Positions 21,176 to 59,693 of a DNA stretch of 64,000 nucleotides are shown one piece after another. The DNA lies in the NCBI GenBank assembly GCA_965649825.1, contig OZ287704.1:48001-112000 (forward strand), given 5' to 3'. How positions within the stretch are numbered: the stretch's first letter is position 1; each line of letters starts with the position of its first letter. The notes below the pieces were generated by a model. That model made no database searches. It was not told the origin of the DNA and worked only from the letters and a program-made list of their open reading frames with translations. This DNA is from Penicillus capitatus (taxonomy: Eukaryota > Plantae > Chlorophyta). The position numbers were made by a program, and so were the translations under genes.

Positions 21176-21219
21176 TTTAGTGGTTCTTCCCGAGGCTGAT
21201 CACGAGGTACGGTTCTTTT

Positions 21220-23831: not shown

Positions 23832-25032
23832 AAGTGAATGGCTGCGAAATGCCTGTCAACAACGTTTGTTGAGTTTGCCGCGCTTTTTGTTACTGGCTCC
23901 GGCTTGCTGGTTGAGGAAGTGAAAGATCCGCAGTGCATGCATGGTTCGCGGTGACGTCGGCGACAAGCACGTTTAGCATCCACTCGCCCAGTCTGCTTAC
24001 TGCAACGCCTCTGCTGCCGAGTGAGCAACGCGTGGTAGCCAAAATGCGCTCGACATGTACAGTCCACAGGGCCACAGAAAAATGAGACAGAAGGCGCCGA
24101 GTGTCGCCACAAGAGGCAAGTAAGCAACGATATGCAGGCACTGAACGTAGATTACTGTGTCGAGCAGCCAAAAGAACATCGAACATGCGACAAATCCTTC
24201 GAGAAATGCAAACAGAGCTTCTCCGTCGATGCTACAAAGGGACTGTGTGTTCGCCACGCGGTTTCGCGTAACGTCGGACAGCATCCAGACGGAAACGAAA
24301 GCGGTTTTTACAGTCCTGTTTTTGGAACGCAAAAAAACGAAAGGGGAAGTCGACAAAAGTTTTTGTCCGGGTGGTGACCCTATCGTCGGCCCCCGAACTT
24401 GGCGCGACGTTGTCCTTTCCCCGCCGTAACCCATCCAACTCGGCGCGGGCTCGCCAGACTCAACCGGGTCAACTCTGATGGGACACCCTCCTCTGAGTCC
24501 GGCGCAGGAATCGAACCCCCGCGGTCGTACTTCTCGAACTGGTCCAACTGCACCATCCGCATTCGGGTCGATCCCCACAGTCGAGAAGACGCTGTCGCCA
24601 ATGAGTGCGCATCGGTGACGACTTCGCCGACGACTTTCTGACGACTCTGTCGAGCGACAAGCATGCATGCATCCTCGACGACTTCGCCGACCACTCTCTG
24701 GACGACCCGGGCAACATCTTTCGCGTCGCATTGTGATCTCCGATACGTTTCTTAGTCATCTGTCGGCGGCACCTGTCGTGTGGTATCCAACGCACAGTTT
24801 CTACTAACAAATCAGACCAATGTCTGAAGTCAGAAACATCAAAACGCGAGTAAGACTGCAAATCGTAGCGGCGTTTGAGAATCTCTCTGTGGTACTTGAC
24901 CCTTTGATTTGTGGGTCAGCCTGCCGAGAAACTTTATGTGAATCTGCTATTCTTTAAGGTTCGCAAAGAGAGCATATCATTCTTTTATTCGCAGTTACGC
25001 ATACATACTCACTGTTACAACCTGAAACGTGC
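23832..25032. repeat. Segmental duplication copy A (direct repeat of 37597-38849)
   Basis: Colinear similarity from aagtgaatggctgcg to gaaacgtgc; flanks visibly diverged, core near-identical. Confidence 0.88.
24331..24623 (-). ncRNA. Candidate Pol III-type structured RNA or SINE-like unit, copy A
   Basis: A box TGGTGCAGTTGG (24544-24555), B box GGTTCGATTCC (24507-24517), T7 tract (24331-24337), several helices; nearly identical to copy B. Confidence 0.45.
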
Positions 25033-26111: not shown

Positions 26112-29100
26112 ATGCGAAACACCTCTCTCCGTCTTCGCTTTTTCCTCTTCTCCTTTACATGTGTCGCGTGCGTCGCGCTCAATGAAGGTGACGTGTTGCT
26201 ATCGCCACGGAATCTGCCGTCGCCCGAGAGAAACCGCGCCAAGGCCCATGGCGAATGGCACCGTTCTCTGCACCAGTTTGCGCCAGAAGGGCCCGTGGTC
26301 GTGACTCGGACGTTTTCGGAGCTCCAGCGAAGCTTTGACTCTTTGGTAGAAAACAGTATCGTCGTCATTGACGCCAAGGAGCCGCTGAAACTGGAAGAGA
26401 CGTTAATTGTCGACCTTCCGGGCATTACTCTCCGCGGGAGTTCCGGTCAGTCGACGACACTCATCTGTCCCTCCGTCTCAAAACCTGCTCTTATCATAAG
26501 GTGTCCATTCAATTATTCATCTGAATGATGTGACATTTGAGTGTGTAGAGGGGCGAGGACGCAGGTGGAGTCTTTGAACTTCATGCGATGCGTCAATACT
26601 TCGGTCATCATTGTCGAACCGCTAGAAGATATGACGTCCACCTCTTCTGGGGTTTCGTTTATAAATTTGGGGTTTTCTGATAACCGGAATCTGGGAGGGG
26701 GAGGCGCTCTGCGGGCCGTCTTGCGTACTGGAAATTTGTTTTGTCCCTCATGGTGGATCAACATCGAGAACTGTACATTTTCACAAAACCGAGCGAAGAA
26801 AGGAGCAGCAATATACGCCGAGAATGTCCACCTTGACATTAGGAACTCAGAATTTACTGAGAATCACGCAGATCATTCGGGAGGTGCCATATCATTTGAA
26901 TCTAAATGCCGAGATCCGAATTCCTTGACGATCAAGAACTCCTCATTTGTTGACAACTGGGCCGTTTCTCGTCTTGCGATGGAGGAAGGGGACGATCATT
27001 CTGAATATCTGGCTGGACGGGGCGGTGCCATTTCGGCCATCAATCCCCGAAGCACAAGCTTTCGGGATGTCATATTTGTGAACAACACCAGCTGTGTTGG
27101 CGGCGGGGCGTTGTATGTTCGCATGATAGAGACGGCAGGGCAACGAAACACGACGGCTGAATTCCAAATCGAGAGATCTGTTTTTGAAGGGAACGGAGCT
27201 TATTGCATGGCAACTCCCAGAGCAGAGCTAAGAAACCCTCGTGATCAAAATCACTACGCTGGAGGTGCCTTCCTCTATCGCTCGACTGTCTATCTCCAAA
27301 TGTACTGGACTGTCCGAGACACAAGATTTACTCAGAATCGCGCCGTATACGGCGGAGCTTTGCAAGTGTCGGGCCAACATGAGACGCCGCTCAATTTGGT
27401 CAATTCTTTGTTAGAAGAAAATGGGGCGCTGCAGAGGGGCGGTGCCATTTGCATCCTTGGGGCTCAGCTTAGAATGCGAGGATCAACACTGCGTAGAAAC
27501 GCTGCACTGCTAGGAGGAGGCATCGCTGTCTGGGATGACGGTCGTCTCATGACGCGGCCTCATTTTTCAAACTACTCTTCGGTTTCGGTCATCGAAGAGA
27601 ATTCTGCTTACAATGGCGGAGGCATCGGAATCTTTGTGACAGGTCTTTTCCCAACAACACTTCTCATCCTTCTGCATTTCTGTGTCCTGCGTCAGACACG
27701 ATCGACTTTTCATCAAGCTCAATGGATCTGAGATCTTTGACTGTGAGGAATAATACGGCATTCCATTACGGTGGCGGCATCCGCGTCTTTGCCGTCTCGA
27801 CTGGGCTCTACTTTCGTGGGATTACTGTGGAGGGCAACAGAGCCATGGCTGGAGGAGGATTCGCATTCACTTCTGCCCCTGTTGCACATTTTGAATCGGC
27901 CGATGGGAAAGCGATGCGTATCGTCAACAACGTGGCGGCTGTCGGTGGTGGTCTGCTCTTCGAGATCGGGCACCTTGTGCCCGTCAATATCACAGTAAGC
28001 TGCTTGCTCCCGATGACGCCGATCGGTCTAAAGCAGAAACCGTAGAATAAGGAAGCCGAAATCTCTGGCAACAAAGTGCGCCACTCTTGGCATCCAGACA
28101 TCGTGGATCTCCGCAGAGCTGGCGAAAGCTATCTCCCCTTGCATGGTGCTCCGATACATAACGCCTTTGATTCCATAGATGGCTTCGATGCACGATTGGC
28201 TTTGGACATCAGAGTTGGATCTTTGGCCGGTCATGGCGGTGGCATCTGCATGTCATTTGTCGACATCCTACCCTTTACTCTGGTCGAAGTCTTCTTCCAG
28301 GACGTAGTGCTGCGGGATAACGAGGCAGTGGTAGGCGGAGGTGCTTCGTTGCATTTCACGGATCTCCTTTGGAGCAGAGGAGACATGAAGTACTGCATCT
28401 CTCGTATGATTGGCATCGAATTCTGTCAACGCATGTACTTCAACAATGTCACTATTCGAGACAACCAGGCAGACTACGCAGGCGGCCTCTTCATCTCGCA
28501 TCCAGACAGTGTCATTGTCACCTGCAACATGACAGACGTGCAGCTGAATTCCACCTTCGAAGCCGTCTACAACAGAAAGATCCAGGCACAGGAAGTGCTT
28601 GATCCGATGCTGGATCTTCAATGCCTCGTCATTGAGGACAACCGCATCTCTGTATGTCACTTACCTTGTCAAGACGTGTGTTTCGATGAGGATGGTGCGA
28701 TGCAGGATGGGGAGACTGTTGATGGAGCGGACGTTGGCACTTTGGCAAGGGCATTGGCAATCGATGGCCTAGAGGAAGGAACGGATCTGAGACGCGTGGC
28801 CAGTGGGGAGAAACTCTCTCTTCCGTGCGACGAGAAGGGAGAGAAAGCGTCATCCTGCCTCGAAGGATTCACAGTCTCCGTGTTGGATGCTTTCAATCAG
28901 ACCATTTCCAGAGGCATCGATGACGCGTCTCTGGAGCTGTCTTTGGAATCGCCAAACATCGGAGGTGCCATTCATTATGTGACAAAGCACGGTGTGGCTC
29001 GGATCGACGCGACGATGGCTCGAGGAATCGGCGTCGAGTCTTATGTGACCATCCTGAACGACCGAGAGCCTTCCATTCGGACGCAAGCGGTTTTCTCCAC

Positions 29101-31174
29101 AAGGCGGTGTTATCCTGGAGAGTTCGTAACGGGCGACAGCTGCCACTCGTGTCCGGCGGATGTCTACAGCTTCAATGCCTCGCTGGGACAGTGCCATCCC
29201 TGCGAGGCCCATGCCAGATGCAGGGGACAAGCATCGCTGGTGCCCGAAGTTGGCTACTGGCACTCGACGCCCTTCTCTCCCAAGTTCCACCGATGCATTG
29301 AAAAAGAGGCGTGTCGCTTTGATGACAGGGAAAAGAACCTGGATGCATTCTACCAGAACGAGGAAGAGCTTCAGAAGGATCTGGACAAGATGAATGCCTA
29401 TCTCGAAGGAAACGATTCTCTGCCAGAATTCCCAAACTACCAACAGTGTGCCGAAGGGTACGAAGGCGTGCTCTGTGGCTCGTGTCAGCAAGATCACGGA
29501 CATGGATTCTCAGGAACCTGCGTTTCCTGTCCATCCGAGAGGGGCAATGCAGGGATGCTGTTGGCGGCGGCCATCTTCTGGACTTTTGTCGTCATCGGCG
29601 TCAACTGTCTGGTCACTCTGATGTCGGCCAGGACAAGGATTCAGCTGGTCCGCCACGAAACACACAACCAGGACAACAATCGCGCCGGGACGTTGGAGCG
29701 AACGACGGCTCACATTCGAGAGAGCGTATCTGTCAGGATACTTCCATCCGGACCTTGCACACTGAGCCCTGCCAATTCGGGGTTCAGCGATGTCTTCTGT
29801 CACCAGGTCCTGACGCAGTATCTCGTCACCACTGTCCAGCTGACAGAAACACTCAAGATCCTCATCAACTACCTGCAGGTCACGAGCTCGGCCATGCGAC
29901 TCTCCGTCGATTGGAGTCGCGTCCTCAACAGTCTCCTCTCTGTCGAAGGTGCACCCCCTTGATTCCCCCTTCCTGATCTAATGCCTCTATGTGCAGCGGC
30001 TTTTGTGGGTGTGACCAGCGAGGCGCTGTCCATTCCTTTCGAATGCAACTTTCAGGGATCGACGACGCACTGGTTACCTTCGATCCTTGCCATATGGATG
30101 CGACTTCTCACCCCTTGCTTGGCGCTGACAGGGCTCATTCTCATCTACGTCCTCTTCTGGATCATTCGTCACTTGACACGCACCACCGAGTTAGAGTCAA
30201 CGAGCAATCTCCGAGCCAGCGACCTCATCACAGGCGTCATTGTCATCATCATCGTTGCGGTGCACTTCTCATACATCGACAACGTCCGCGAGATGCTGCG
30301 AATCGTTAACTGCATCCGAGTGGATGCGGATGATGCATCTCTGACATCGCATCCGTACGGACAGTACGCCATCGAAGAAGGTCGTACGGTCTGGGCAGAG
30401 GACACCGATCTCATCTGTTTTCAAGGAAAGCATCAAGTGACTGGAATCGCCGGTATCATCGGATTGGTGCTGGCACTGATGCTCATCATCTTCGCTGTTT
30501 TCTGGTTGCCAGCAAACAAGAAGAAATCCACCTCAACGCAGTTTGTCGCACGTTACTGGTTCATTTATCAGGCGTACAAAGACAAATGGTACGCGATTCC
30601 ATGGGAGGCAGTGATTCTGCTCCGCAAGGCACTCATCTCGGCCGTCATTGTCTTCTCCTTTCAGCTCGGGCCGAGTCTGCAGGCAGCACTGTGTGTAGGG
30701 ATTCTGATCGCGGCGCACATTCTCCAAGTCGTATGCCAGCCATTCAAGGTCCCAGAGAATCATGTCCACGTGCCAGAGTACGCAGGTCACTTCCTCAAGG
30801 CAATGCACATGCCGAACCTCGCTGCGCGCTTTGTCCGCTGGAACAACTCCCTGTCTCTGAACGACCTGGAATTCGCATCTCTCTTGTGTTCATTTTTTAT
30901 CTTCTATACGGCTGTCATCTTGACAGACATCGATGTTTCCGAAATCGTTGTCCAATTAATCGCCATTGTTGCCGTGGGCACAAATGTCCTTTTCTTACTC
31001 TACCTGTTGTACCGTCTGTACTACGGACTTCACATACTCTTGGATCTGAGGTTGGAAATGGATAATCCAACCTTTGTTGCAACACATGAAAACGATCCTG
31101 GGTGTTTCTATCTAATGCGTAAATTGTATCGAGTCTGCCGTGTCGTCATCCTGGCACATCTCCATGAGAGATAA
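26112..31174 (+). CDS. Beta-helix, Cys-rich, multipass membrane protein, paralog 3
   Basis: Signal peptide MRNTSLRLRFFLFSFTCVACVA; GGA repeats; GYWHSTPFSP; LINYLQVT; WAEDTDLIC; ARYWFIYQAY (ORFs 26079, 26541, 27722, 28076, 29981). Confidence 0.85.
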
Positions 31175-37596: not shown

Positions 37597-38849
37597 AAGT
37601 GAATGGCTGCGGGATGTCTGTCAACAACGTTTGAGTTTGTCGTGCTTCTCACCACTGGCTCCGGCTTGCTGGCCGAGGAAGTGAAAGATCCGCAGTGCAT
37701 GAATGGTTCGCGGTGACGTTGTCGGCGAGAGACTTTCGCATTCATTCGACCAGTCTGCGTACTGCGTCACTTCTGCTGCCGAGTGAGCAACGCGTGGTAG
37801 CCAAAATGCGCTCGACAGGTAGAGTCTACAGGGCCACAGAAGAATGAGACAGAAAGGGACGAGTGTGGTCAAAAAAGCTAGTAAAGCAACGGTAGGCGGC
37901 CACTGTACGGAGACTGCTGTGCCGAGTAGCCAAAAGAACATCGAGCATGCGACAAAACCTTCGAGAAATGCAAACAGAGCTTTTCGGTCGATGTTGCACA
38001 AGGGACTGGGTGTTCGCCGCGCGGTTTCGCGTAACGTTGGACAGCATCCAGACGGAAACGAAAGCCGTTTTTACAGTCCTGTTTTTGGAACGCAAAAAAA
38101 ACGAAAGGGGGAGTCGACAAAAGTTTTTGTCCGGGTGGTGGTGACCCTATCGTCGACCCCCGAACTTGGCGCGACGTTGTCCTTTCCCCGCCGTAACCCA
38201 TCCAACTCGGCGCGGGCTCGCCAGACTCAACCGGGTCAACTCTGATGGGACACCCTCCTCTGAGTCCGGCGCAGGAATCGAACCCCCGCGGTCGTACTTC
38301 TCGAACTGGTCCAACTGCACCATCCGCATTCGGGTCGATCCCCACAGTCGAGAAGACGCTGTCGCCAATGAGTGCGCATCGGTGACGACTCTCCAGAGGC
38401 GTCCTTGACGACTTTGTCCGCCGATCGCGTGCATCTACGACGACTTCGCGGACGACTTTCTGACGACTTTGTCCGCCGACGACTGTGAGCGTATAACGAC
38501 TTTGCCAACCACTCTCTGGACGACCCGGCAGTAGTCACAAGCCTCGCATGGCGATCGCAGATACTTATTCTTAGTCGATTATCGGCGGCACCTGTCGTGT
38601 GGTATCCAATGCTAGGTTTAAGTAAGAAGTGAAACCAATGTCTGAATTCAGAAAGCGTCAAAAAGAGAGTCAGACTGCGAGTCGTGACAACGTTTGAGAA
38701 TCTCTCCGTACACTTGACCATTCGATTCGCATGCAGTCACCCCGGAGAGAGTTTGTGCAAAATTTGGTATTCTTTAAGGGTTCTCAAGGAGAGCACATTA
38801 TACTTCTGTTCGCAGTTACCCATACACACTCCTATAATCCGAAACGTGC
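37597..38849. repeat. Segmental duplication copy B
   Basis: Colinear with 23832-25032; similarity stops at gaaacgtgc where the retroelement-like sequence begins. Confidence 0.88.
38094..38390 (-). ncRNA. Candidate Pol III-type structured RNA, copy B
   Basis: A box 38311-38322, B box 38274-38284, T8 tract 38094-38101. Confidence 0.45.
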
Positions 38850-41522: not shown

Positions 41523-42203
41523 TTGTTTTCCTACGCTATGAGCCTATGGTTCGACGGGGAGAAGATGGCGGAAGTCGAACATAGAATGTATGTGACTCAA
41601 AAGTTTGTCGAATTCGTTGGAAGCAAGGCCGACGAGGGACCGGTGGAGGAGGCCGACGAGGGACCGGTGGAGGAGGCCGACGAGGGACCGGTGGAGGAGG
41701 CCGACGAGGGACCGGTGGAGGAGGCCGACGAGGGACCGGTGGAGGAGGCCGACGAGGGACCGGTGGAGGAGGCCGACGAGGGACCGGTGGAGGAGGCCGA
41801 CGAGGGACCGGTGGAGGAGGCCGACGAGGGACCGGTGGAGGAGGCCGACGAGGGACCGGTGGAGGAGGCCGACGAGGGACCGGTGGAGGAGGCCGACGAG
41901 GGACCGGTGGAGGAGGTCGACGAGGGACCGGTGGAGGAGGTCGACGAGGGACCGGTGGAGGAGGTCATGGAGGTAGTGGCGGCTTCTAAACGCCGCGGTT
42001 CCAAACGCCTTCGCCGGTACGCCGTGGAGTACAAAGAGGAAGCGGAGAGGGTAAAGAGGGTAAAGGAGGACCATGGCCTTCGCGACACGGCGGCGAGGAG
42101 GGAATGGCTGAGAAAGTTGAAGAAGGCGGACAAGGAAAAGCGTAAGGTTAACGGTGATGGGGAGGGTATATCTAAGGTCACTCGGAAGAGGTCGAGAAAG
42201 TGA
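41523..42203 (+). CDS. Acidic tandem-repeat protein (ADEGPVEE x14) with basic NLS-like C-terminus
   Basis: 226-aa ORF whose non-repeat tail is rich in K/R (KRRGSKRLRR, RKRSRK). Coding status unproven. Confidence 0.45.
   Translation: MFSYAMSLWFDGEKMAEVEHRMYVTQKFVEFVGSKADEGPVEEADEGPVEEADEGPVEEADEGPVEEADEGPVEEADEGPVEEADEGPVEEADEGPVEEADEGPVEEADEGPVEEADEGPVEEADEGPVEEVDEGPVEEVDEGPVEEVMEVVAASKRRGSKRLRRYAVEYKEEAERVKRVKEDHGLRDTAARREWLRKLKKADKEKRKVNGDGEGISKVTRKRSRK
41627..41962. repeat. 24-bp minisatellite, 14 copies
   Basis: Unit ggccgacgagggaccggtggagga; the last two units carry c>t. Confidence 0.97.
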
Positions 42204-43638: not shown

Positions 43639-44947
43639 GTGACGAGTCCTGAACGGCCAGACAAAATATTACAGGGATCGTGCATCATTCGGTCCATTAA
43701 TCGCCCCACAACGGCTGGAAACGTCCTCTCTCGGTGGAACCTGCCTCTTGTTCGATTACGGTGATCGGATAGACGAAGAGAGGAATCACTTCCGGATCCG
43801 GTACCACGTTCACAGCAATCGATCGGTATCGTTTCATCTGGCGGCATATCAATTCCTGTCGGCGCCTAAAGGCGCGAGGACGTATCTGCAGAGCTCGACT
43901 AACTCAATAGCTTGTCAAGGGATGAAGCGGGATGGCTCAAAGTGCCGAGAGTCGGATATTGACACGACTGTCGTCTTCGCGCTCTTTCGCGTCTACTGTC
44001 TGAGAGACGCACTAAACAAAGAGACGACGCATATATTAGATTAGAGTCATACGCACGAAACTCCTCGTCGGACACAAAGAGCAGACGTCTTGTGTCATTC
44101 TCTTCTTCTCCGTCGAACTCTGGATGCAGACCACTCACTCTAAACACATCAGCGCGATTGAGTCGCTCAGCCATCTATCCAGGGATACTGTTTGCGGTAT
44201 AGTGCGTCCAGACAGGAGATTCGTTCCGTAGACGCAAAGAGACTCGTCTTCAGTCAGCGTAAAGTTTAGCGGCACATCCGCTCGGAGAAATGATTCTGTA
44301 TAAAATGAATCTAAGGAACTTCAGAGCAACGACGGCTGATTCCTTAACCTTAGAATAGGACGAAGCATGAGTTTGGTTCACTGCACATCTGTTCTACAAC
44401 TTCATGTCACAGAACAGCCCTCCGATCAGAAATGCAGGGAGGGTCATAGGTTTACCAAACCACAAAACAAGAAAAGAGAATGGCGTCACGTCATGCATCA
44501 CACATGAGCTGCCTGGCAGCTTGTGAGGGCATTCGGACAATCCATGAGAGAGATATGCATATGCCGCACTGAACGTGTCTCGACAGGCGTCTGATTCCAA
44601 GGGCTGGTTCGTCAGATGGATATCGACTACGCGATTCTGGAACCTCGCCTGTGATCGACTAAAAAAGTTAGCAGTGCAGGTAATATACGCTGCACGGTCA
44701 AAGCTTTAAATTCAAAGCTGTGTAGCGAGTTCTGCCAGGCGCAGTTTAGCAGCAGCGATTCAGACAACGCGTTTGCCTTAAGATCTGCACGAAGTCGGTC
44801 AACACAAGAGCCTTGTGGCAGGCATCTTTTAATGGAGGCTTTATACTGAACCTCTTGTTTTCTCCACTGCAAACGCTTCTCAATGTTTAGACAAACAGAC
44901 ACAAATGGATTTGAAAATTGAATAGAAAGACAACTGAAAGAATGCAA

Positions 44948-47900
44948 TCAGGGCTTCAACAGATCCTCGAGAGTTGAACGAATCTCTGCGGTGCAGGTGG
45001 ATGTCGAGACACAGATGACGTCCAATGGCGTCTTGCCGCTCTTTCCTTCTATTGTTTTCGAGGCTCCGTGAGCCAAAAGAATCTGAAACCGGGGTGTCAA
45101 ACAAAGAGGTAACAACCTGTTTACCTTGACAATCTCGACGTGTCCCTTGCGCGAGGCCCAATGAAGCGATGTGAAGCCAGAACGGTCAGCGACATTGACT
45201 CCGGCTTTGTATTCCAAAAAAATCTGTTGATAGACGATTCGAAACTACCCATACAAGCGGATTCTGTGGTCACCTCGACGACATCAACATATCCGTTGCC
45301 TGCTGCCAACATCAGCGGCGTTTTCTCGTTTTGGGTGACATCGACGTGGGCTCCACCGTCCAGAAGAACCTATGGCTCATTCGCCGTCAGCATCGTCTCG
45401 ACGACGGAAGTCCGATAGCTATACCTTGGCGATATCGGCGTACCCGAGATTCGCCGCCGTGTGGAGAGCCGTCCACATAGTACTGGACGCAAGGTTTACA
45501 TCAATTCCGGCATCCACCAGAATCTACAGAGCAATCACTTGCGAGACACCGAAGCTAAACGCTTACCTTCAGGATCTCGAGCTGCTCAGATCTAACCGCG
45601 CTGTAAAGAAGATTCCACTCTCCTATGCGCAAGCTGGCGCCGGCTTCCAGCAGAACCTGTCGGTCTATACGTTAAAACAGCTCATGTAAGCGGATGTTGC
45701 CGTCACCTCGACGACGTCGACGTGTCCCTTGGCCACTGCAAACATTAGCGGCGTTTTCTCGTTTTGGATGACGTCGACGTGAGCTCCACCGCCCAGAAGA
45801 ATCTATCGCTCATTCGCCGTCGTCTCGATGGCGGCGGTCCGATGATTTACCTTGGCGACATCGGCGTACCCGAGGTTCGCCGCTGCGTGAAGAGCAGCCC
45901 ATCCGTTTTTGTCGGTCAGGTTTACGTTTATTCCGGCATCCACCAAAATCTGCAGAGCGATCACTATGCGAGACACCGAAGCTAAACGCTTACCTTCAGG
46001 ATCTCGAGCTGCTCAGATCTAACCGCGCTGTAAAGAAGATTCCACTCTCCTATGCGCAAGCTGGCGCCGGCTTCCAGCAGAACCTGTCGGTCTATACGTT
46101 AAAACAGCTCACGTAAGGGGATGTTGCCGTCACCTCGACGACGTCGACGTGTCCCTTGGCCACTGCAAACATTAGCGGCGTTTTCTCGTTTTGGATGACG
46201 TCGACGTGGGCTCCACCGTCCAGAAGAACCTATGGCTCATTCGCCGTCAGCATCGTCTCGACGACGCGAGTCCGATAGCTGTACCTTGGCGATATCGGCG
46301 TACCCAAGGTTCGCCGCTGCGTGGAGAGCAGCCCATCCATTTTTGTCGGTCAGGTTTACATTAATTCCGGCATCCACCAGAATCTGCAGAGAGATTGCTA
46401 AGCGAAACACGCGTGAGGCGGAAGAGTTACCTTCAGGCAGTCGAGCTTCCTGGACCTGATGGTGTTGTAAAGAAGATTCCACTCTCCTATGCGCAAGCTG
46501 GCGCCGGCTTCCAGCAGAACCTGTCGGTCCATGTGTCTGTGTCGCTCACGTAAGGGGATGTTGCGGTCACCTCGACGACGTCGACGTGTCCCTTGGCCAC
46601 TGCAAACATTAGCGGCGTTTTCTCGTTTTGGATGACGTCGACGTGAGCTCCACCGCCCAGAAGAATCTATCGCTCATTCGCCGTCGTCTTGACGACAGGA
46701 CTCCGATGACTTACTTACCTTGGCGACATCGGCGTACCCGAGGTTTGCCGCTGCGTGGAGAGCCGTCCATCCATTTTTGTCGGTCAGGTTTACATCAATT
46801 CCGGCATCCACCAGAATCTACAGAGCGATCACTTGCGAGACACGCGAAGCTGAACGCTTACCTTCAGAATCTCGAGCTGCTCAGATCTAACCGCGCTGTA
46901 AAGAAGATTCCACTCTCCTATGCGCAAGCTGGCGCCGGCTTCCAGCAGAACCTGTCGGTCCATGTATCTGTGCAGCTCATTCATGTAAGCGGATGCTGCG
47001 GTCACCTCGACGACATCGACGTGTCCTTTGGATACTGCAAACATTAGCGGCGTTTTCTCGTTTTGGATGACATCGACGTGAGCTCCACCGTCCAGAAGAA
47101 TCTATCGCTCATTCGCCGTCGTCTTGACGACAGGACTCCGATGATTTACCTTGGCGACATCGGCGTACCCGAGGTTCGCCGCTGCGTGAAGAGCAGCCCA
47201 TCCGTTTTTGTCGGTCAGGTTTACGTTTATTCCGGCATCCACCAAAATCTGCAGAGCGATCACTATGCGAGACACGCGAAGCAAAACGCTTACCTTCAGG
47301 ATCTCGAGCTGCTCAGATCTAACCGCGCTGTAAAGAAGATTCCACTCTCCTATGCGCAAGCTGGCGCCGGCTTCCAGCAGAACCTGTCGGTCTATACGTT
47401 AAAACAGCTCATGTAAGCGGATGTTGCCGTCACCTCGACGACGTCGACGTGTCCCTTGGCCACTGCAAACATCAGCGGCGTTTTCTCGTTTTGGGTGACG
47501 TCGACGTGGGCTCCACCGTCCAGAAGAACCTATGGCTCATTCGCCGTCAGCATCGTCTCGACGACGGGAGTCCGATAGCTGTACCTTGGCGATATCGGCG
47601 TACCCGAGGTTTGCCGCCGTGTGGAGAGCCGTCCACATAGTACTGGACGCACGGTTTACGTCGATGCCGCCATCCACCAGAATCTATCAAGCGATTGATG
47701 AGCGAAATATGCGTAGCCGAACGCTTACCTGCAGGCAGTCGAGCTTCCTTGACCTAACGGTGTTGTAAAGAAGATTCCACTCTTTTATATGTATGTCAGC
47801 TCCATTATTGAGGAGGACCTATATTTCGCCACGTCATTCTCACGCCGCAGAGAGAGATCGTCGTTGTTCGATCACCTTCAATGCTGCGGCGTGTCCATTA

Positions 47901-49747
47901 ACTGCGGCTTTGTAAACCACTGTCGTTCCGTTTTTCTGCCGAGAATCGACATTGGCGCCGGCTTTCAACAGAACCTGTTGAAAGACCAATGATGTGACAG
48001 AGCAAGCGACTGTATGTGAACGTCACCTCAATAATCTCGACATATCCAAGAAACGCTGCCACGTGAAGCGGAGTTTCACCATCGGCAGGTGCAGCTTCCG
48101 GGCGCGCGCCCATATCGATGAGGACCTTGAGTCAACAACAGTCCTCGAGATCAATAGACGCGTTTGACAGCAAACGCGGCGTAGTTTATTGATTGCTGAA
48201 CAGGCATACATATGCGTAACGCATGAACGCTCAACCGTTTTAATGTGACAAGATGCAGCACAGTCGATATCACGTCGCATACCTCGGTGCACTCAAGGGC
48301 GTCGTTAGCAGCGGCCCAGTGCAAGAGTGTGGAGCCTGTCTGCAATGGGTAACCCTCCACAGTAGCGCTCTCATCAAACTTACTGTCGACTTCCAAGCCA
48401 GCCAATACAAGTGCCCTGGCATCCATCGCATCATCTGCTTGAATTGCAGACTTCATCTTCTATTCCGACACAACAAACGAATACACCGAGTTTCGTTTCG
48501 GCGAGACTTACGGCAAGCATCTCATACGGCGACAGCAGCTCGTACTCTTTACGCCGTTTAGTCAATTCCTTCGTTTCTTTGCCTCGACGCTGCAGTCACG
48601 CGGTCATGGTGTCGGCGAAGAGTATTCGCCAAATCTTCGCTCACCTTTGATCGACTTTCGATTACTTCTTCGATCCAGTCGAGAAAGTAATCGACGTTTG
48701 TGTAGATAGCGGGTTCATACCCACTGCACTGTTCGGATTCGTCTGCCGCGTATCCGTAGGACGTGATTCCGACGATCAAGTCCAGACTCGGATCTCCCTT
48801 TTCGATGTATCTCTTCGGAGAATCGGCCAACAGCAATGGACCACCCGAATCGCCTGTCGCAGCAGGTCGTGTGTGAATGGTAGATACACGACGCGGAAAC
48901 GACACGACACATTACCTTTACATGTGTCTTCGCCCAGACCGCCGGCACATATCCAGCTGCCCGCGTCCGTCACATTGGGTGGCACTTCACAGTGTTTCTG
49001 ATCGACGATGGCCAACCGATCGGTAACGCGCAGCGTCTTCGCGACAGCAGCAGATTCGGTCTTGCCCCATCCCGCGGCCGCCATATAGTCTCCAGCCGTA
49101 ATGGTGATATTGCCCGATCCCAGACGCGGTCGCGTCAGACCCTTTGCCTTTTTGTCCAACTTCAGCAGGGCGATGTCGTATCCGTCTCCCACATCGCCTG
49201 TAAACTTGGGGTGGACGTGTCCCTCGACGACATCAAACACCTAAAAGAATACCGACGTGCGGCATCGCAAACGGAGCTCGTCTGTCACTCGCCTTATCCT
49301 GATCTATTTCGTCGACTTTGTGGACGCCACAGTGGACGACGGGGGATAACCCGACCGACCCTTCGATTCGGGTGTCTACGCAGTGTGCCGCCGTCAGAAT
49401 CCAGTCACGTCGGAAGAGCGTCGAGCCGCACACGTGCTCTCGACTGCCGCGCCTGCGCAAGCTGCACATGTAAGGAAAACGCCCCGGTGGCGCCTTCTTT
49501 CCCGCCTGCCCATCATTTCGGTCGGACGAACAAACAAACGAACATGTGAGAAAGGCATCGTCGTGCCGTTTACCACGATTTTTTGGTAGATGATAGAGTT
49601 GTGAAAGTCGCGTTGGCCGTTTTCTGCCAAGCACAGAGGTTTCTTAGATGTGCAAGAACGCTTCGCATTCTTCCTACCGTGGCTACAGGAACACGACGGT
49701 AGTGCGAACAATAACATGCACACCGCCAGGTAAAGACGCGTCGCCAT
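44948..49747 (-). CDS. Predicted secreted trypsin-like serine protease fused to ~23 ankyrin repeats
   Basis: Signal peptide MATRLYLAVCMLLFALPSCSC; TAAHC, YDIALL, EDTCK|GDSGGP; in-frame splice path through a 78-nt linker exon (48512-48589) into ankyrin exons; stop at 44948. Confidence 0.75.
45280..47820. repeat. ~430-bp tandem unit x6 (three ankyrin exons plus three introns)
   Basis: Recurring ttaccttcagg/aaagaagattccactctcc block near 45562, 45989, 46427, 46858, 47289 and 47725. Confidence 0.95.
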
Positions 49748-50562: not shown

Positions 50563-50911
50563 AATGGAAAGGTTTCGGTGGATACGCTCAAAATCGATTT
50601 CCAGACAGTCCATTCGGCGTTTGTCACCGATCCCGACGATTCCAGCGCCTGGATCTACTATCGATGGTTGTTGAGTCACTTTCTTCATCTGGAAAAGAGT
50701 GAGGAGACGGCGGCGATGCTGAAGGACGAGGTGGCTTTTTTCGAACGGGAGTCGATGGAATTGAATCCTGAATCGAAGTGGACGCTGCTAACGTACGCGG
50801 TGCTTTTGGAGGTCGGTGACCAACGTGAAGGTCGCGAATCATCTCAGCAGATCAAGAAGATCTATTGAATACTGTGCGACGTTGAACCCATGAGACAAGG
50901 ATTCTATCAAG
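50563..50911 (+). pseudogene. C-terminal fragment of a protein prenyltransferase alpha subunit (RabGGTase alpha-like)
   Basis: FQTVHSAFVTDPDDSSAWIYYRWLL, ELNPESKWTLLT and LCDVEPMRQGFY; no N-terminal PPTA repeats recognised upstream. Confidence 0.6.
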
Positions 50912-52660: not shown

Positions 52661-55600
52661 ATGACTGCCATGCACTACCGCTGTGCATTGCTTCTCCTTT
52701 TTGCCCTTCCCCTATCTCTATCGCAGAGAGGTGCGTGCGTGCTCGTAGTGCAGCGATACAGACTGAGAGCGTCGATTTCTTTAAAATGTAGTGCGTCAAG
52801 GAGAGCGTTTTCGGGAGGAGAATGCGCAGGTTGTTACCGTTCGAACGGAAACGGAGCTTCGACAAGCGTTGCTAACTTTGCGGAAAGGACAGCTCATCGC
52901 TGTGGATGCCGCGGAGATCGCTTTAACGGACACTCTTACCATCGCTGTGCGCAATGTCACACTCAGAGCCGCGCGCGAGACACCTGTTGTCGTTCGGTGT
53001 CCCCGCAGAGCTAAGCGAAATGCACTGAGAATCCAGTACGTTTCGATTTTGTCTCACACTTTCGTGAGAGGACGTTGTCTTACATAGGCGAGGTCACACA
53101 CGAATCTCCTCTCTGCATTTCACTCACTGTACCGAAGAGGCCGTCGTCGTCGAGCGTGGCAGACGTCGAAGAGTGAGGGCAACATTTGAAAATGTGCATT
53201 TCACACACAACGGCGCAACAGAAGGCGGGATTCATGGAGCAGCTGTCCGAGCAGATGCCTGTGCGGCTGGTAACGTGTGTCCAGCATCACCCGTTCTACG
53301 ATTCCAATCCTGTACATTCGAACATAACCGAGCCTCTAAGGGCGGGGCGATCTTCGCAGAGGATGCGTATATCGTCATCAACCAATCCACCTTTTCCAAG
53401 AACACGGCCGCCGTCACTGGAGGCGCTGTCTATTTTCGAAACTCGCAGAATACGACATTGACGATCGAGGGGTCCACATTCGAGGAGAATACTGCTGGAT
53501 CGGAAGAAGGAGAAGATATAGCTTTAAACGCTGGTCCGCTGGATTGGTTTAATCTTACATTGCTCGTAGTCGGGCGCGGCGGTGCCGTTTTTGCGCACAG
53601 TCCTATGGAAATCTCCATCCGCCGATCTGTCTTTTCAGACAATCTCGGCCGTCGGGGAGGGGGTGCCATTGCTGTCCTGTGCAATGAGATAAACACATCC
53701 GAGATCACGAGGGGATATAGAATAGACGATTCCCGTTTTGAACGGAATGCGGCTATTAGCGAAACACATCGGGGTTTCGAGCTGCCGCAGCCTTTTCTGT
53801 GGGCGCCGCACGTCGGCGGAGCACTTGCTCATGAAGCTCTCAATTCGTCGTTATCACAGGCTTGGACGCTCAAGAACATATCCTTCCTGGACAACGTTGC
53901 CGTTAACGGAGGCGCCCTCAGTTTTCGCTCCCTGACATCCGTGACAGGGCCGCACAGAATCTCTACCTGTATCTTTGAACGGAACATCGCCACGAGAAGA
54001 GGCGGATCGATTTCTCAAGACACATCCCATCTCGTCATCGTCAACACGACCTTCGTGCACAGCAAAGCTCTCTACGGTGGATCGATCGTAGTGAATGAGA
54101 ATGCCATACTGGATTTCGAGACCGATCCAGAGGACGCATCACTCCTCAGCTACATCGAGAATTCGACCGCCGTGTACGGCGGAGGGATTTTCTCTATCGG
54201 TGGAGGTAAGTACATCTCACTCCTCCGGAAGCAGACTGTGGATGCCTAGGCGATACCCACCTCGCTGCTTTGGTCCTTCGCGACAATGTGGCCATGCGCA
54301 GTGGAGGTGCAATGACCATCCAAGAAAGCACCGGAGTCGCTAGGTTGTCTGGCCTCCTTATCGAGAACAACCGTGCCTATGTCGGCGGTGGTATCGAAAT
54401 CTTGAGCATCGCTGCCTTCTCCGTGGTGTCTGATGATTTCCGGCCAACGGTGATTCGAAACAACACGGCTGTGACAGGAGGCGGTCTATACTATCGTGCT
54501 GGACTATACCCTCTTCTTCTTTTCCGAGTAAAGCACATAATTCGCAGGCCCGTGCTAAATCTGACATACAGATTGCGGACAGTTTGTTTATCGGCAACCG
54601 AGCGCTGCCGGCCGATTCCTCAGAAATGAAGGAGTTAGAGGATGCCAGTCGAAGCTACTCGCCATTATCCTCTGCACACGAACGGGCACCGAACTATTCG
54701 AGGCATCTGGGGAATTTTTCACTGCTCGAGTACATAACTGATGGGAAAGAGGGATTCGGAGGCGGCATTGGTGTATCCTTCTTGGATGTGCAGCTGTTCA
54801 CGGCCGTCGAAGCAATTTTCGAAAACCTGCAGCTTGAAGAGAACGAGGCTGTCGTGGGAGGTACTATCTTATCTGGAGAAACAGTCTTTCTTCATCGTTC
54901 TCTCCAGGTGCCGTTGCTGCGCTCATGGATCCACTCTACTGGAATCAAGGCCACAGAAAATCATGCTTCCCCATAGCCATCGGTCTAGATGCTTGTCAGA
55001 TCTTCGTGTTCTCCAACGTGACGGCGACTCGGAACAGAGCTGATTATGCAGGAGGCGTCTTTTCGAGCCTGCCGGAAGGAATTGCCGTCGCGTGTGCTGA
55101 CGACACGCCTCGTGTCACCGCTCGCAACTTCACAGGATTTCTTCCAATCGCCGATTCGCTTTTTTCCTACTGCTCGAATATCTCCGCTAACGAGATCTCG
55201 GATAATGTGGCAGCGCACGGGACCGACGCCGCCACCAATGTTGTCTTGTTAGTGATCGAAGGATGGAACGGACCGTTGAAACGCGTCGCCAGTGGAGAAC
55301 AGTTGCGGATTCCCTGCCAAGACACCCGTAATGCGTCATGCTCACGGGAGCTCAGAATTCTGGTGAAGGACATCTTTAATCAGACGATTGTTCGAGGCGT
55401 CGACGATGCCAATCTGGAAATTATGCTCGTGTCGGACGCCGTGGTTGGAGACCTCAGGTACAGAGCAGCGAATGGCATTGCTGTGATCAACAACACGGCT
55501 GCCTGGGGTATCAACGTCTCCACCACACTCACGATCGTCAGCGAACGCGATCGGAGTATCCGACTCGACGTCGGGCTGTCTACCAGAGAGTGTTATCCAG

Positions 55601-57811
55601 GCGAGATCAATCAGGTCAATATCTGCCAGAGCTGCCCACACGACCAGTACGGATTTGATCCCTTTCTGGAAAAGTGTGAGAGCTGTGAGAAGAATGCTGA
55701 ATGCAGTGGAGGTGCGGCTCTGGTGCCAAAGAACGGATACTGGCACTCCACTCCTTTCTCGCCTGTCTTTCGTCAGTGTATCGAACCAGATGCCTGTACC
55801 TACGAAGGCAGAAGTGCACGTCTGGTAGCCTTCTACGAAGACGGTGCCAGACTGCAATCTTACCTGAGCGCCCTTGACGGGCGGGATGGACAAGAGAGTG
55901 CGGCGATGGAGACAGCGGATTATCAGCAGTGCTCCATAGGATATGAAGGTCCGCTCTGTGGGTCATGTCAAGACGGTTACGGTCACACTTACTCGCGAAA
56001 GTGCAAGGAGTGTCCCGAAGGGAGCTCCAGGAAGAGCTTTCAGCTACTGCTGAGCTGCGGATATCTCTTTGCATTGATCGGGGCGAATTGCCTCGTGACA
56101 CTGATGTCCATGAACAGTCGCGTTGAGTTGGTCAAACACGAGCTACGATGTGCAACCAGGACACGATCGAGGACGATTCAGCAGTTGACTGCGACGAGCT
56201 CTCGACAAGACATCGCGCGGCAGTCTTCGCAGCGCACAGGTGTGCATTTCATCCACGGCATCTCCAACGATCGCTGTGCAGATGGATCAGCCGAATCAGG
56301 AGGAACGATGGCCGTCAATACACAGCAGGTTTTTGCAAAGCAGCTCATCGCCACCGTTCAGCTAACGGAAACACTCAAAGTGAGAAGCCAGGCAACGAGG
56401 CAGACGGATGCATTCACGACTGTCGTTTTCCAGCTGTTGATCAATTATCTGCAAGTGACGAGCATCGCTTTGCGGCTGCAGACGGACTGGAATTCTGTGC
56501 TGAAAGGACTGCTTAAACTACAAGGTTCTGTCTCTCACCCTGCCCCTGATGTGACGGACGTGTCATCCAGGATGTCTTGGCGGGCTGTCCAACTTCCTTG
56601 TCTCCGTTCCATACGAATGTCATTTCGAAGCGGATCACACGTCATCTTCCGCCAACGCCCTGTGGCTGCATCTCAGCACACCAGCGATCGTTCTGGTCGC
56701 CCTTTTGCTGGTGCTGCTGCTCGCCTGTCTCGTGACCAATCTGCTCAGAATGCGGTCGGGAAATGCCAGCCTGCCAGATGCGGAAGCTCGAAAGCGATTC
56801 TTCACTTATGTCATCATCATCTGCATCGTCGCTCTCTACTTCTCCTACATCGATCTTGCGCGAGAATTCCTCCGAGCCATCAACTGCGTCGAGATCCAGG
56901 CTTCCCATGCCGACCTCTCCCCAGACCACCCTTACCTGCAGTACGCCACGGAGGCGGTCGGTCAACACGTGTGGGCAGAAGACACAAATCTGGTTTGTTA
57001 CGAGGGGAGACATCTGGCGGTGGGCATTGCTGGCATCGTCGGTCTGTTCTTTCTGCTCTGCGTCATCGTCTGGATCGCTGTCTGGCTGCCGCTCAACGGA
57101 AGAAACCGACGCAAGACGGAGTTCGTTGCCCGTTACTGGTTTCTCTATCAAGCCTACCGCAAGAAGTGGTACACAAACGGCTGGGAATCGATCATCCTTG
57201 CCCGCAAAACACTGATCGCCACCGTCATCGTCTTTGCCGTTCATCTGGAACCGACACTACAAGCAGCGATGTGTGTCGGCATCCTTGTCATCTGTCACAC
57301 ATTGCATTCACTCATTTTGCCATTCAAAGTCCCAGAGGAGCACCAAAACACTCCCGAGTATGCAGGCGGCACTTTTCGGCTGATTCGTTTGCCGGGATGG
57401 GCGGCCACCTGGGTCAAGATGAGCAATGCCATCGATCTCAATGTCCTCGAATCGATGTCGCTCTTCGCATCCATCACTATGTTCTTCGCTGCCATCGTAC
57501 TCCATGATACGTCGGCCACTTCTCCAGGCCGCGTCAGCATGATCATCTTTACGTTTGCCGTGAACATCGGGTTCTTGCTCTATGGGTTGTATCGTCTCTA
57601 CTGTGGACTCCTCATCGTGGTCGACCTGAAACTTGAAGTGCACAATCTAAAGATCTCTCCCAGGCAGGAGAGACGCATGGATGTCATCAGTCTGAGCAGA
57701 AAGGTCCTCGTGTTGACCGCCTTCTATGGTCGGACATGTGTGGGAGGGGACGCATCAGATCATTCCGCAGTCTCGGCAGATCAGTCCTCTGAGCATTCCG
57801 TCCCCCCTTAA
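52661..57811 (+). CDS. Beta-helix, Cys-rich, multipass membrane protein, paralog 4
   Basis: Signal peptide MHYRCALLLLFALPLSLS; same motif series (ORFs 52791, 53173, 54270, 54925, 56705). Confidence 0.85.
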
Positions 57812-57991
57812 ACCCGATTCTCATCGTTCATGCTAGACATGTGCGCTTCTCAGATCAAGTTATGATTGCGGGATGGGATTGGTTCAGTTCACCGTGCGGT
57901 TGCTGTTCTCCGTGGACGCGATGGGGCATCATTGTTATAGATTTGAGCATTAGGCCACAGATGTCGGCATTCTCAGCGCAAACGCATCGCC

Positions 57992-58566
57992 ATGACGACG
58001 CTGCGCCGTTTTCGCTGCGAGGATCTCTTTCGTTTCAACCACGTCAACTTGGACCACCTGACCGAGACCTACAATCTCCAATTCTACCTTCAATACCTCG
58101 CCACATGGCCCGAGATGTGCATTGCCGCCGAGGGACCAGGCCAGCAGATGACCAGCTACGTCTTGGGCAAGCACTCTGTGATAGACTGACCTGCGTCGAA
58201 CGCATGGCTCTTCTAGGCAAGGCCGAAGGAGAGAGGCAGAATTGGCATGGGCACGTCACGGCCATCTCCGTGGCGGCCGAGTATCGCCGACTGAAACTCG
58301 CCCGCAAGCTCATGGCTCTGCTCGAGGACATCACCGAGACGGTGCACGACGGATTCTTCGTCGATCTGTTCGTGCGCGCCTCGAACACCGTGGCCATTCA
58401 GATGTACCAACAGTTGGGCTACGTTGTCTACCGAAGAGTGCTGCTCTATTACAATGGGACAGAAGATGGACTGGACATGCGCCGTGCCATGAGGCGCGAC
58501 AAAAATAAAGAGTCGATGATTCCGTGTGACGCACCCATCATGCCGAGCGAACTTGAGTACGATTGA
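57992..58566 (+). CDS. NAA20: N-terminal acetyltransferase B catalytic subunit
   Basis: MTTLRRF..VNLDHLTETY..YLATWPE, WHGHVTAISVAAEYRR, FFVDLFVRASN; one GC-AG intron at 58167-58216. Confidence 0.96.
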
Positions 58567-58588: not shown

Positions 58589-59149
58589 TCATTCTTCGAT
58601 CCACGGTGCATTGGTCTGATCCCATTGAACAATCTCTTCTGGCTGAAACCAAAGCTCCATTTCCCGAATGCCGTTCTCTGGCGAATCGCTGCCGTGGACG
58701 ACGTTGCGTCCTTTGTCGATCGCAAAGTCGCCTCGAATGGTTCCGGCGGCGGCCTCGGTTGGATCGGTCACGCCGATGAGATTTCTGGCCCCTCGGACAA
58801 CGCCATTCCCTTCCAGTGCCATACAGACGACGGGCCCCGACGTGATGTAGTCCACGAGTTTGGGATAGAAGGGCTTGTCTTGCAGCTCCACGTAATGCTG
58901 CTCGGCCAACTCGCGCGGACACTGCATCATCTTGAGGCCCTTGAGTTTGTAACCCTTGTGTTCGAACCGCGACACGATCTCGCCGACGAGGCCGCGCTGA
59001 ACGCCGTCTGGCTTGACCATGACATAGGAGATCTCACTCCGCACACTCAGACACGCAGCACGCCGCCGAGAATTAGCGGCAGAATGCAAAGGACGGCGAA
59101 GAAAATGACCTTCCCTAGTGGCCAGACGCAACGAGCAGCGGGCCATCAT
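58589..59149 (-). CDS. NDPK: Nucleoside diphosphate kinase with organellar transit peptide
   Basis: YVMVKPDGVQRGLVGEI, SGPVV, GTIRGDF, RNVVHGSDS; R/S/A-rich N-terminal extension. Confidence 0.96.
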   Translation of the reverse strand: MMARCSLRLATREGHFLRRPLHSAANSRRRAACLSVRSEISYVMVKPDGVQRGLVGEIVSRFEHKGYKLKGLKMMQCPRELAEQHYVELQDKPFYPKLVDYITSGPVVCMALEGNGVVRGARNLIGVTDPTEAAAGTIRGDFAIDKGRNVVHGSDSPENGIREMELWFQPEEIVQWDQTNAPWIEE

Positions 59150-59693
59150 GCGATTTGACGAGATGAGTCGGGCGTTGGTCGAAATCGAGGAGGAGCCGTT
59201 GCGCATGGAGCGCTATACGTCGTTCGTCTCCGAACCCTCGGCCGGAGCCATCGCCACGTTCACCGGGGTGACGCGAGATAGCTTCGAGGGACGCCGCGTG
59301 ACGAAGCTCGAATACGAGGCCTATCCCGAAATGGCCACGAGCCTGATGGAAGTAGGACATGGAGGGCAGACCACCCGGAACGTGATCCTCGGAAGATTAG
59401 AGTCTCTGTGGAACGATGCTGAAGAAATGGGACATCTGCAAAGTGTCACTGGCGCATCGAGTCGGAACGGTCCATGTGGGAGAGCCCAGTGTCATCATCG
59501 CCGTCTCCTCTCCACACCGACGCGAAGCGCTCGAGGTCAGTGCGGTCGCACGCTAGGCTATGTCACTGGGTCGTTGTGTTAGGCATGCTCCTGGGCGATC
59601 GACGAGGTGAAGGCGAAGGTGCCGATCTGGAAGAAAGAGTTCTTCGAGGGCGGATCGATTTGGAAAGAGAACGAAGAACAAAGGCGGCCTTAA
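59148..59693 (+). CDS. MOCS2B: Molybdopterin synthase catalytic subunit (MoaE/CNX6)
   Basis: [50 protein letters not shown]; two introns. Start is ATG 59148 or 59163. Confidence 0.93.

Follow-up and report, generated by a model that had tools for sequence, protein, structure and literature searches.

A Predicted Trypsin-Like Protease Gene With a Long Ankyrin Array in the Green Alga Penicillus capitatus

A stretch of 64,000 nucleotides (nt) of the Penicillus capitatus genome (Chlorophyta; assembly GCA_965649825.1, contig OZ287704.1, positions 48,001 to 112,000), hereafter the window, carries a trypsin-like protease coding region that continues in frame into a long array of ankyrin repeats. Positions are given in window numbering, and the parts of this gene all lie on the minus strand. 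The region from 49747 to 44948 is, as read from its sequence, one intact gene of a green alga. Its probable product is a trypsin-like S1A serine protease of the zymogen type, destined for the secretory pathway and tied by a flexible Lys/Arg-rich linker to a 23-repeat ankyrin arm; the array grew by cassette duplication. There is strong comparative evidence for the fusion, whose join was judged real on three independent lines, namely paralogous loci, the architecture of homologues, and transcript-like contigs. The fusion is real but not unique: the window gene adds a member of unusual length to a family that already exists but is undescribed.

Gene Model and Junction Between the Two Domains

The complete coding region (44948..49747) comprised 28 exons with 1105 codons plus the stop in a hand-built splice model without in-frame stops, whose ankyrin part was built by anchoring on repeat peptides. 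The frame opened with an ATG at 49747 and closed at TGA 44950-44948. The sizes of the 27 introns ranged from 42 to 68 nt, with a single exception of 157 nt, and 26 of them were of the GT-AG type. The sole GC-AG intron was intron 2 (49241..49292; AAG/GCGAGT...TTTTAG); its GC donor was also found in the paralogous locus L001, and with intron 2 removed the protein became collinear again with intron-free homologues. The 1105-amino-acid (aa) product comprised, in order, a signal peptide, a propeptide, an S1A protease, a 26-aa basic linker, the ankyrin repeats, and a tail with two cysteines. A G+C content of ~52% and many short GT-AG introns indicated that the window is eukaryotic. A second protease or ankyrin gene was sought within the 64 kb and not found, and an Rfam search of the window returned no match.

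The last protease exon ended with ...IESRSK at 48645, next to the GTGAGC donor of intron 4 (48590..48644; 55 nt, GTGAGC...TGCAG). Linker mini-exon 5 (48512..48589; 78 nt, phase 0-0) followed, encoding RRGKETKELTKRRKEYELLSPYEMLA, in which 10 of 26 residues were Lys or Arg, including RR and KRRK. After intron 5 (48460..48511; 52 nt, GTAAGT...AATAG), the next exon began with KMKSAIQ. A preliminary description of this DNA had proposed these two introns and the exon between them, and its coordinates proved exact, both introns being canonical GT-AG. It had also predicted a protease-only form with a stop at 48558 if intron 4 were retained; in that case the frame does run into a TAA at 48560-48558.

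Conservation of the Junction in Paralogous Loci

The closest database proteins, 58-76% identical, were prokaryote-style open reading frame (ORF) fragments on contigs of the metagenome assembly ERZ25074695. Four paralogous loci in this assembly (L001-L004) each contained the protease, the mini-exon, the ankyrin array, and the same tail, with 75-80% nucleotide identity to the window at the junction. Both donors and both acceptors of the junction were kept in the five-way alignment of the window with these loci. The mini-exon measured 78, 81, 81, 81, and 87 nt in the five copies, all indels were multiples of three, and the fusion frame was the only one open in all five, the other frames carrying stops. 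Intron 4 varied among the copies by 1-nt and 3-nt indels and intron 5 by 2- and 4-nt indels, the GTAAGT donor of the latter being invariant. Exons 2, 4, 6, and 7 were free of gaps in reliable alignments, exon 6 at 78-81% nucleotide identity to the paralogues, and exon 3 had one 3-nt gap, in L003.

The ratio of nonsynonymous to synonymous substitution rates (dN/dS) of the mini-exon was below 1 in all ten pairs of the five copies (0.12-0.97). Against the paralogues, it was 0.15-0.37 for the protease and 0.15-0.69 for the ankyrin N-terminal cap in exon 6. In these comparisons the mini-exon evolves like coding sequence when it is read in the fusion frame. The earlier claim that the protease is joined in frame to the ankyrin region as one gene thus held, on the conserved splice sites, the indel pattern of the mini-exon, its frame open in five of five copies, and the same order of domains in at least 31 homologues.

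Several other features of these loci were observed. In L003 (~10300-10420, contig ctg322585 of ERZ25074695, 4x coverage), GDAGG replaced GDSGG and Cys220 was lost, the frame of exons 2-6 being open; its protease is either a pseudo-protease or a decaying copy. About 100 nt 3′ of the stop codon, a conserved stretch of ~30 nt, GTATAAAGCCTCCATTAAAAGATGCCTGC, was present in both the window (~44820-44850) and L001 (~11805-11835), and it may be a 3′ untranslated region (UTR) or polyadenylation element. On a 462-kb contig, NACHT-domain genes (L002 1593-3062; L004 1-1440), one of them with HEAT repeats, lay within ~8 kb of two paralogous trypsin-ankyrin genes, and BTB_2 and protein-kinase genes recurred near the paralogues there. 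No NACHT ORF was noticed among the window ORFs of at least 130 aa, in which no search aimed at NACHT was made.

Family Architecture in the Bryopsidales

The N-terminal 392 aa were used as the query for homologues, and the best 120 matches were examined for Pfam domains. Both Trypsin and Ank domains (Ank: PF12796, PF00023) were carried by 31 of these matches, which came from Bryopsis sp. KO-2023, Ostreobium quekettii, EukProt entries, and Logan/JGI contigs; every named Trypsin+Ank relative among the best 120 belonged to the Bryopsidales (Bryopsis or Ostreobium). The protease was N-terminal to the ankyrin part in all 31, and most had a hydrophobic N-terminus. A 30-row alignment was made from 29 homologues and a collapsed window protein, a 630-aa row in which exon 10 was joined to exon 26 for alignment only and which is not a natural product. 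The catalytic triad, the disulfide cysteines, and, in the tail, two cysteines and one leucine were invariant in it.

Two homologues, P0004 and P0005, were ~40% identical to the window protein with 85% query cover. They were uninterrupted ORFs on contigs of 1952 and 2044 nt (L005, L006) with short UTR-like flanks, and one of the contigs ended in sequencing adapter. Because they are free of introns, whereas genomic copies of the family have an intron every ~100-300 bp, these contigs look like spliced mRNA.

The basic linker was confined to the subfamily of the window protein, and other members had acidic or Pro-rich linkers or a Cys-rich insert. A six-Cys module of ~55 residues was located between protease and ankyrin domains in P0020, P0032, P0036, P0038, P0042, P0045, P0046, P0067, and P0069 (alignment columns ~540-600), with the pattern (D/G)C.CS.DG.S....TG..GC...........CY......C.....S.LFPGA.W..C.; the window gene was without it. 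No PDB relative of this module was found (best E = 1.2).

Databases list members of the family under the names "hypothetical protein" or "Peptidase S1 domain-containing protein," but the family is uncharacterized. A full-text search of the published literature returned no description of a trypsin-ankyrin fusion in the Bryopsidales, and the Bryopsis and Halimeda genome papers mentioned neither domain.

The Protease Half

The predicted signal peptide (49682..49747, residues 1-22) consisted of a charged start (MATR), a 12-residue hydrophobic core (LYLAVCMLLFAL), and a c-region of small residues (PSCSCS). It was the sole hydrophobic stretch in the window protein (mean Kyte-Doolittle value of at least 1.6 over 19 residues), and the N-termini of the homologues were comparable. 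The propeptide and activation site (49577..49681) covered residues 23-56 (34 residues) up to K56/I57-V-A-G, IVAG being completed across intron 1. The site was collinear with R/ISGG, R/IVGG, and K/IVGG of the homologues and with the mature N-terminus of elastase, VVGG, and by its sequence it could be cleaved by a trypsin-like enzyme.

The S1A (chymotrypsin-fold) protease domain (48645..49576) was encoded by the end of exon 1 and exons 2-4 (49505-49293, 49240-48916, and 48853-48645). Residues 57-307 matched solved S1A chains, including elastase, matriptase, factor XI, and trypsin, with E ~1e-22 (phmmer against PDB), the match spanning residues 1-248 of the 251-residue domain. The invariant triad comprised His99 (chymotrypsin His57; TAAHC; 49383..49385), Asp151 (Asp102; DIAL; 49175..49177), and Ser240 (Ser195; GDSGG; 48846..48848). 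The S1-pocket residue, placed at chymotrypsin position 189 by alignment to elastase, was Asp234 (EDTCKGDSGGP; 48926..48928), and Asp239 in GDSGG corresponded to position 194, the partner of the zymogen-released N-terminus in S1A proteases. Three classical S1A cysteine pairs, C84/C100, C213/C227, and C236/C280 (42-58, 168-182, and 191-220), were present and invariant across the family alignment. The signal peptide (as a prediction), the IVAG site, the triad, and the S1 aspartate had all been reported in the preliminary description and were found in place on the minus strand.

Asp189 predicts Arg/Lys specificity for this protease. In the alignment to elastase, positions 216 and 226 were Gly and Ala (EPAIYT), respectively; with these residues alongside Asp189, Arg/Lys specificity is expected with a somewhat narrowed pocket. 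The protein ended with ...EDLLKP, which is not of the KDEL/HDEL type. Entry into the secretory pathway is plausible: N-termini throughout the family resemble signal peptides, a zymogen site is present, the disulfide cysteines are conserved, and the window protein has no membrane helix.

The Ankyrin Array and the Tail

The ankyrin domain started in exon 6 (48283..48459), which encoded a helical N-terminal cap and the first repeat, KMKSAIQ...LLHWAAANDALECTE. It contained a conserved in-frame methionine, Met335 (48456-48454), and its cap aligned with that of the transcript-like homologues P0004 and P0005. Exons 7-27 (45125..48125) each held one repeat (90, 96, or 99 nt), and all introns were of phase 0. 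Exons 6-28 thus formed 23 ankyrin exons of one repeat each, in units of 30-33 residues that followed the ankyrin consensus TPLH...G..(D/E)(V/I)V..LL..GA, except that every third unit was a degenerate 30-residue form without the TPLH motif. The array matched DARPin, ankyrin-1/2, and NOMPC chains in PDB (E = 3.5e-107 to 6e-94 for DARPin and ankyrin-1), and latrotoxins were also among the matches. In NCBIfam, only sub-threshold ankyrin matches to bacterial effector models were obtained, which is repeat similarity and not membership.

Six tandem cassettes occupied 45224..47818, each with three exons and three introns in 427-437 bp (~432 bp). Tandem Repeats Finder gave a period of 435 with 5.8 copies for this region, and the identity among the cassettes was 75-93%. 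The proportion of nonsynonymous differences (pN) between cassettes was far below that of synonymous differences (pS), e.g., 0.009 vs. 0.058 and 0.019 vs. 0.172, and in most pairs the exons were better conserved than the introns, e.g., 97.9% vs. 86.6%. These substitution patterns indicate that the duplicated repeats are translated and constrained, under purifying selection. Hypervariable ankyrin cassettes were also considered and rejected on the pN and pS values. The array was enlarged by tandem duplication of a three-exon cassette, a route open to it since each repeat occupies a phase-0 exon of its own, and the copies were then kept by purifying selection.

The preliminary description had regarded the array as a variable binding module that targets the protease. 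Variability was borne out for the repeat number, which was five in one modeled paralogue and 23 here, the other paralogous genes measuring ~2.4-2.7 kb vs. 4.8 kb; the sequence of the cassettes, under purifying selection, did not follow it. That the array serves in targeting may reasonably be inferred.

The last exon (44948..45082) encoded the C-terminal cap repeat and the tail, ...TPLDVIC1085VSTSTC1091TAEIRSTLEDLLKP, before the TGA stop. The tail fitted the family pattern D-x-(I/V)-C-x(4-20)-C-x(6-8)-L-x-x-(I/L)-L after the last repeat. Its invariant cysteine pair would fit a small disulfide loop, as in an oxidizing compartment.

Structure Model of a Homologue

An AlphaFold model was made of the homologue P0004, which is 41% identical to the window protein, using the 29-sequence family alignment. 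The protease was modeled confidently (~residues 40-287), the linker (288-332) was disordered with a predicted local distance difference test score (pLDDT) below 50, and the ankyrin domain, with its N-terminal cap helix and a C-terminal helix, was very confident (pLDDT up to 98). The predicted template modeling (TM) score (pTM) was 0.49, which suggests that there is no fixed docking between the two domains in the model. Foldseek against PDB matched the model to elastase (TM 0.83 to the target) and to a DARPin (TM 0.89); none of the listed PDB matches was a chain covering both domains.

Comparison With Known Systems

The nearest known systems are the Trypsin+Ank proteins of the Bryopsidales, such as Bryopsis BSKO_04794 (P0010) and BSKO_04805 (P0011) and O. 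quekettii P0077. They have the same order of parts as the window protein, an intact triad, and the two-Cys tail. However, they are only 30-41% identical to it (best named matches 33-41%) and shorter (455-690 aa vs. 1105 aa), and the Bryopsis members have Gly189 and Asp226 instead of the Asp189 of the window protease. Genes of the family are clustered: at least 13 were located on one 7.4-Mb Bryopsis contig (BSKO_04685 to BSKO_04837), and three on the 462-kb metagenome contig.

Animal mosaic S1A proteases (CLIP-domain proteases, coagulation and complement proteases, TMPRSS/matriptase) are secreted or membrane-bound zymogens, activated by cleavage ahead of an I/V-V-G-G N-terminus, with a chymotrypsin fold and extra protein-binding domains that set substrate choice, and the solved structures closest to the window protease come from this group. 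Their accessory domains (CLIP, kringle, EGF, CUB, SRCR) are N-terminal, whereas the window protein has a C-terminal ankyrin solenoid. We know of no solved or described S1A protease with a C-terminal ankyrin solenoid. HtrA/DegP (S1C) proteases also combine a chymotrypsin-fold protease with C-terminal binding modules for substrate capture or regulation, but they belong to another S1 subfamily, are not activated by a new N-terminus, have PDZ and not ankyrin domains, and form oligomeric cages.

Long ankyrin solenoids, such as the 24-repeat membrane-binding domain of ankyrin-1/2, NOMPC, and DARPins, share the 33-residue helix-turn-helix-hairpin unit and are protein-binding. Vertebrate ankyrin genes typically have one repeat per 99-nt exon, as in the window gene. 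The long known solenoids are cytosolic, whereas the window array lies behind a predicted signal peptide. Latrotoxins are among the few ankyrin proteins that act outside cells.

In the Ostreobium quekettii genome, S1 peptidases are strongly expanded, with 189 PA-clan genes, of which ~40% have signal peptides and 25% are membrane-bound; external protein degradation, possibly of the skeletal organic matrix, has been proposed for this expansion (10.1101/2020.07.21.211367). The G+C content of the window (~52%) resembles that of Ostreobium (52.4%), and ankyrin does not occur in the text of that genome paper (10.1101/2020.07.21.211367).

Proposed Mechanism and Alternatives

In the mechanism proposed here, the signal peptide would carry the whole chain into the lumen of the endoplasmic reticulum (ER). 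Cleavage after Lys56 would free Ile57 and render the protease active and Arg/Lys-specific. The independently folded ankyrin solenoid, on its disordered tether, would serve as an arm that binds proteins and keeps the protease on a substrate or an anchoring partner.

Several points weigh against this mechanism. Both junction splices (48645/48589 and 48512/48459) were deduced from genomic DNA, and the ATG of the conserved Met335 at the start of exon 6 would permit an ankyrin-only product. The structure model belongs to a 41%-identical homologue and not to the window protein, and it shows no contact between the protease and ankyrin domains. It is unusual to find ankyrin repeats outside the cell or in the secretory lumen. 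The Ala at position 226 may reduce or shift activity, as in trypsin mutants. In the Ostreobium relative P0089, a membrane helix lies between the domains; its ankyrin part would therefore be cytosolic, and the topology would not be uniform in the family.

Among the alternatives, the one that survives best, although we consider it unlikely, is that the protein acts within the giant cell (in its ER, Golgi, vacuole, or wound-released vesicles) and not as an extracellular digestive enzyme. The features read here from the sequence would fit secretion and lumenal residence alike, and the protein has no domain for binding cell walls or carbohydrates. Extracellular ankyrin domains are rare, and coenocytic algae keep large vacuolar systems. 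However, the C-terminus is without a retention signal of the KDEL/HDEL type, and ~40% of the expanded Ostreobium S1 peptidases were proposed to be secreted, which is also a prediction (10.1101/2020.07.21.211367).

It appears quite improbable that, in the fused gene, the ankyrin part is a C-terminal pro- or inhibitory domain, or a separate product freed by self-cleavage or kexin-like cleavage of the linker. The linker, with 10 of 26 residues Lys or Arg, does adjoin a protease predicted to cut after these residues, and it is disordered, and hence accessible, in the homologue model. The basic linker is nevertheless limited to one subfamily, the others having acidic or Pro-rich linkers or a Cys-rich insert, and the model (pTM 0.49) shows no contact of the ankyrin domain with the active site.

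Two adjacent genes, one for a protease reading into intron 4 up to the stop at 48560-48558 and one for an ankyrin protein starting at Met335, would make the join an artifact. This is very unlikely. The stop in the retained intron exists, AAGATGAAG is invariant in the five copies, and the prokaryote-style ORFs called in the public assembly stop shortly past the protease (P0002). On the other hand, the gap between the last protease codon and Met335 is only 186 nt, too short to hold both a 3′ UTR and a promoter. Read-through tails, VSEDLANTLRRHHDRVTAASRQRNEGID in the window and VSQILTNTTCDTMIT in L001, each ending at a stop, vary in sequence and in length, and their frame is shifted between copies by 1-nt indels. 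Read in the fusion frame, the mini-exon behaves as coding, and a single ORF holds both domains in at least 31 homologues, some of them on intron-free contigs.

The remaining alternative, a decaying locus or a 23-repeat array assembled in error from a shorter one, could draw on the five repeats of the fully modeled paralogue, the much shorter other paralogous genes, and the loss of the catalytic Ser (GDAGG) and Cys220 in L003, which shows that decay does happen in the family, but it is scarcely credible for 28 exons without stop or frameshift, with intact splice sites and catalytic residues, and for cassettes that differ by 7-25% with pN far below pS, a pattern that no collapse or inflation of the assembly would give.

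Other Features of the Window

Four paralogous large genes were present on the plus strand (6657-11390, 12226-16925, 26541-31174, and 53173-57811). Each had a signal-peptide-like start, Gly-rich repeats (GGAIY/GGAL; polymorphic-membrane-protein or beta-helix-like), a Cys-rich EGF-like stretch (C..C..D.Y...C..C), and a multi-pass membrane C-terminal part, and they look like a lineage-specific surface protein family. Between two of them, a non-LTR (long terminal repeat), LINE-like retrotransposon was located on the minus strand (17942-22659), with an intact 1077-aa ORF (17942-21175) containing endonuclease and reverse-transcriptase motifs and an upstream 479-aa ORF (21220-22659) with a zinc-knuckle-like motif. 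A direct repeat of ~0.8 kb was found at 23869-24651 and 37631-38418, comprising two blocks (82% and 96% identical), and its copies were 13.76 kb apart. The copies are separated by ordinary genes, which makes a dispersed repeat more probable than an LTR pair. The ORF at 41523-42203 encoded ~15 tandem EADEGPVE units of eight residues followed by a Lys/Arg-rich tail, at a local G+C peak of 58%.

The housekeeping neighbors comprised a MutS-family mismatch-repair gene (692-3694, minus strand), an N-acetyltransferase-like ORF (57841-58566, plus), a chloroplast-type nucleoside diphosphate kinase (NDK) gene (58589-59206, minus), a MoaE-like ORF (59118-59582, plus), and a prenyltransferase-alpha-repeat-like ORF (50578-50868, plus). 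The NDK was of the chloroplast NDK2 type; its best named matches were 66-71% identical and came almost all from land plants, with Ulva at 68%, which places the window within green plants and algae. Together with the Bryopsidales origin of the named Trypsin+Ank relatives and the G+C content, this makes a siphonous ulvophyte related to Bryopsis and Ostreobium the probable source. For the MutS fragment, no named relative exceeded 27% identity; a sequence 86% identical to it was present on a 1.6-Mb contig in a public ENA assembly and points to a sister species or a second haplotype.

Significance

Siphonous green algae are single giant cells whose wounds are sealed in seconds to minutes, and Ostreobium bores into coral skeletons. 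Few S1A proteases occur in the green lineage, and nearly all ankyrin repeats reside in the cytosol. The broadest proposal that could be drawn here is that a clustered and rapidly growing set of secreted trypsin-like proteases arose in siphonous green algae, with an extracytosolic ankyrin recognition arm whose length is tuned by phase-0 cassette duplication. We offer it as a speculation that is doubtful in this full form. If true, it would mean recognition-coupled proteolysis, for example in wound sealing, in defense against invaders of the giant cell, or in attack on the protein matrices of carbonate substrates, and it would be a green-lineage functional counterpart of the modular protease cascades of animals. 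As regards defense, two paralogous loci adjoin NACHT-domain genes.

The locus provides a clean example of a repeat array that grows in frame through a structure of one repeat per phase-0 exon. A protein-binding arm on many of these proteases points to selective and not bulk proteolysis, and the published idea of digestion did not consider this arm (10.1101/2020.07.21.211367). A conserved and expanded family that puts an S1A protease and ankyrin repeats behind a signal peptide represents unexplained cell biology of the siphonous green algae.

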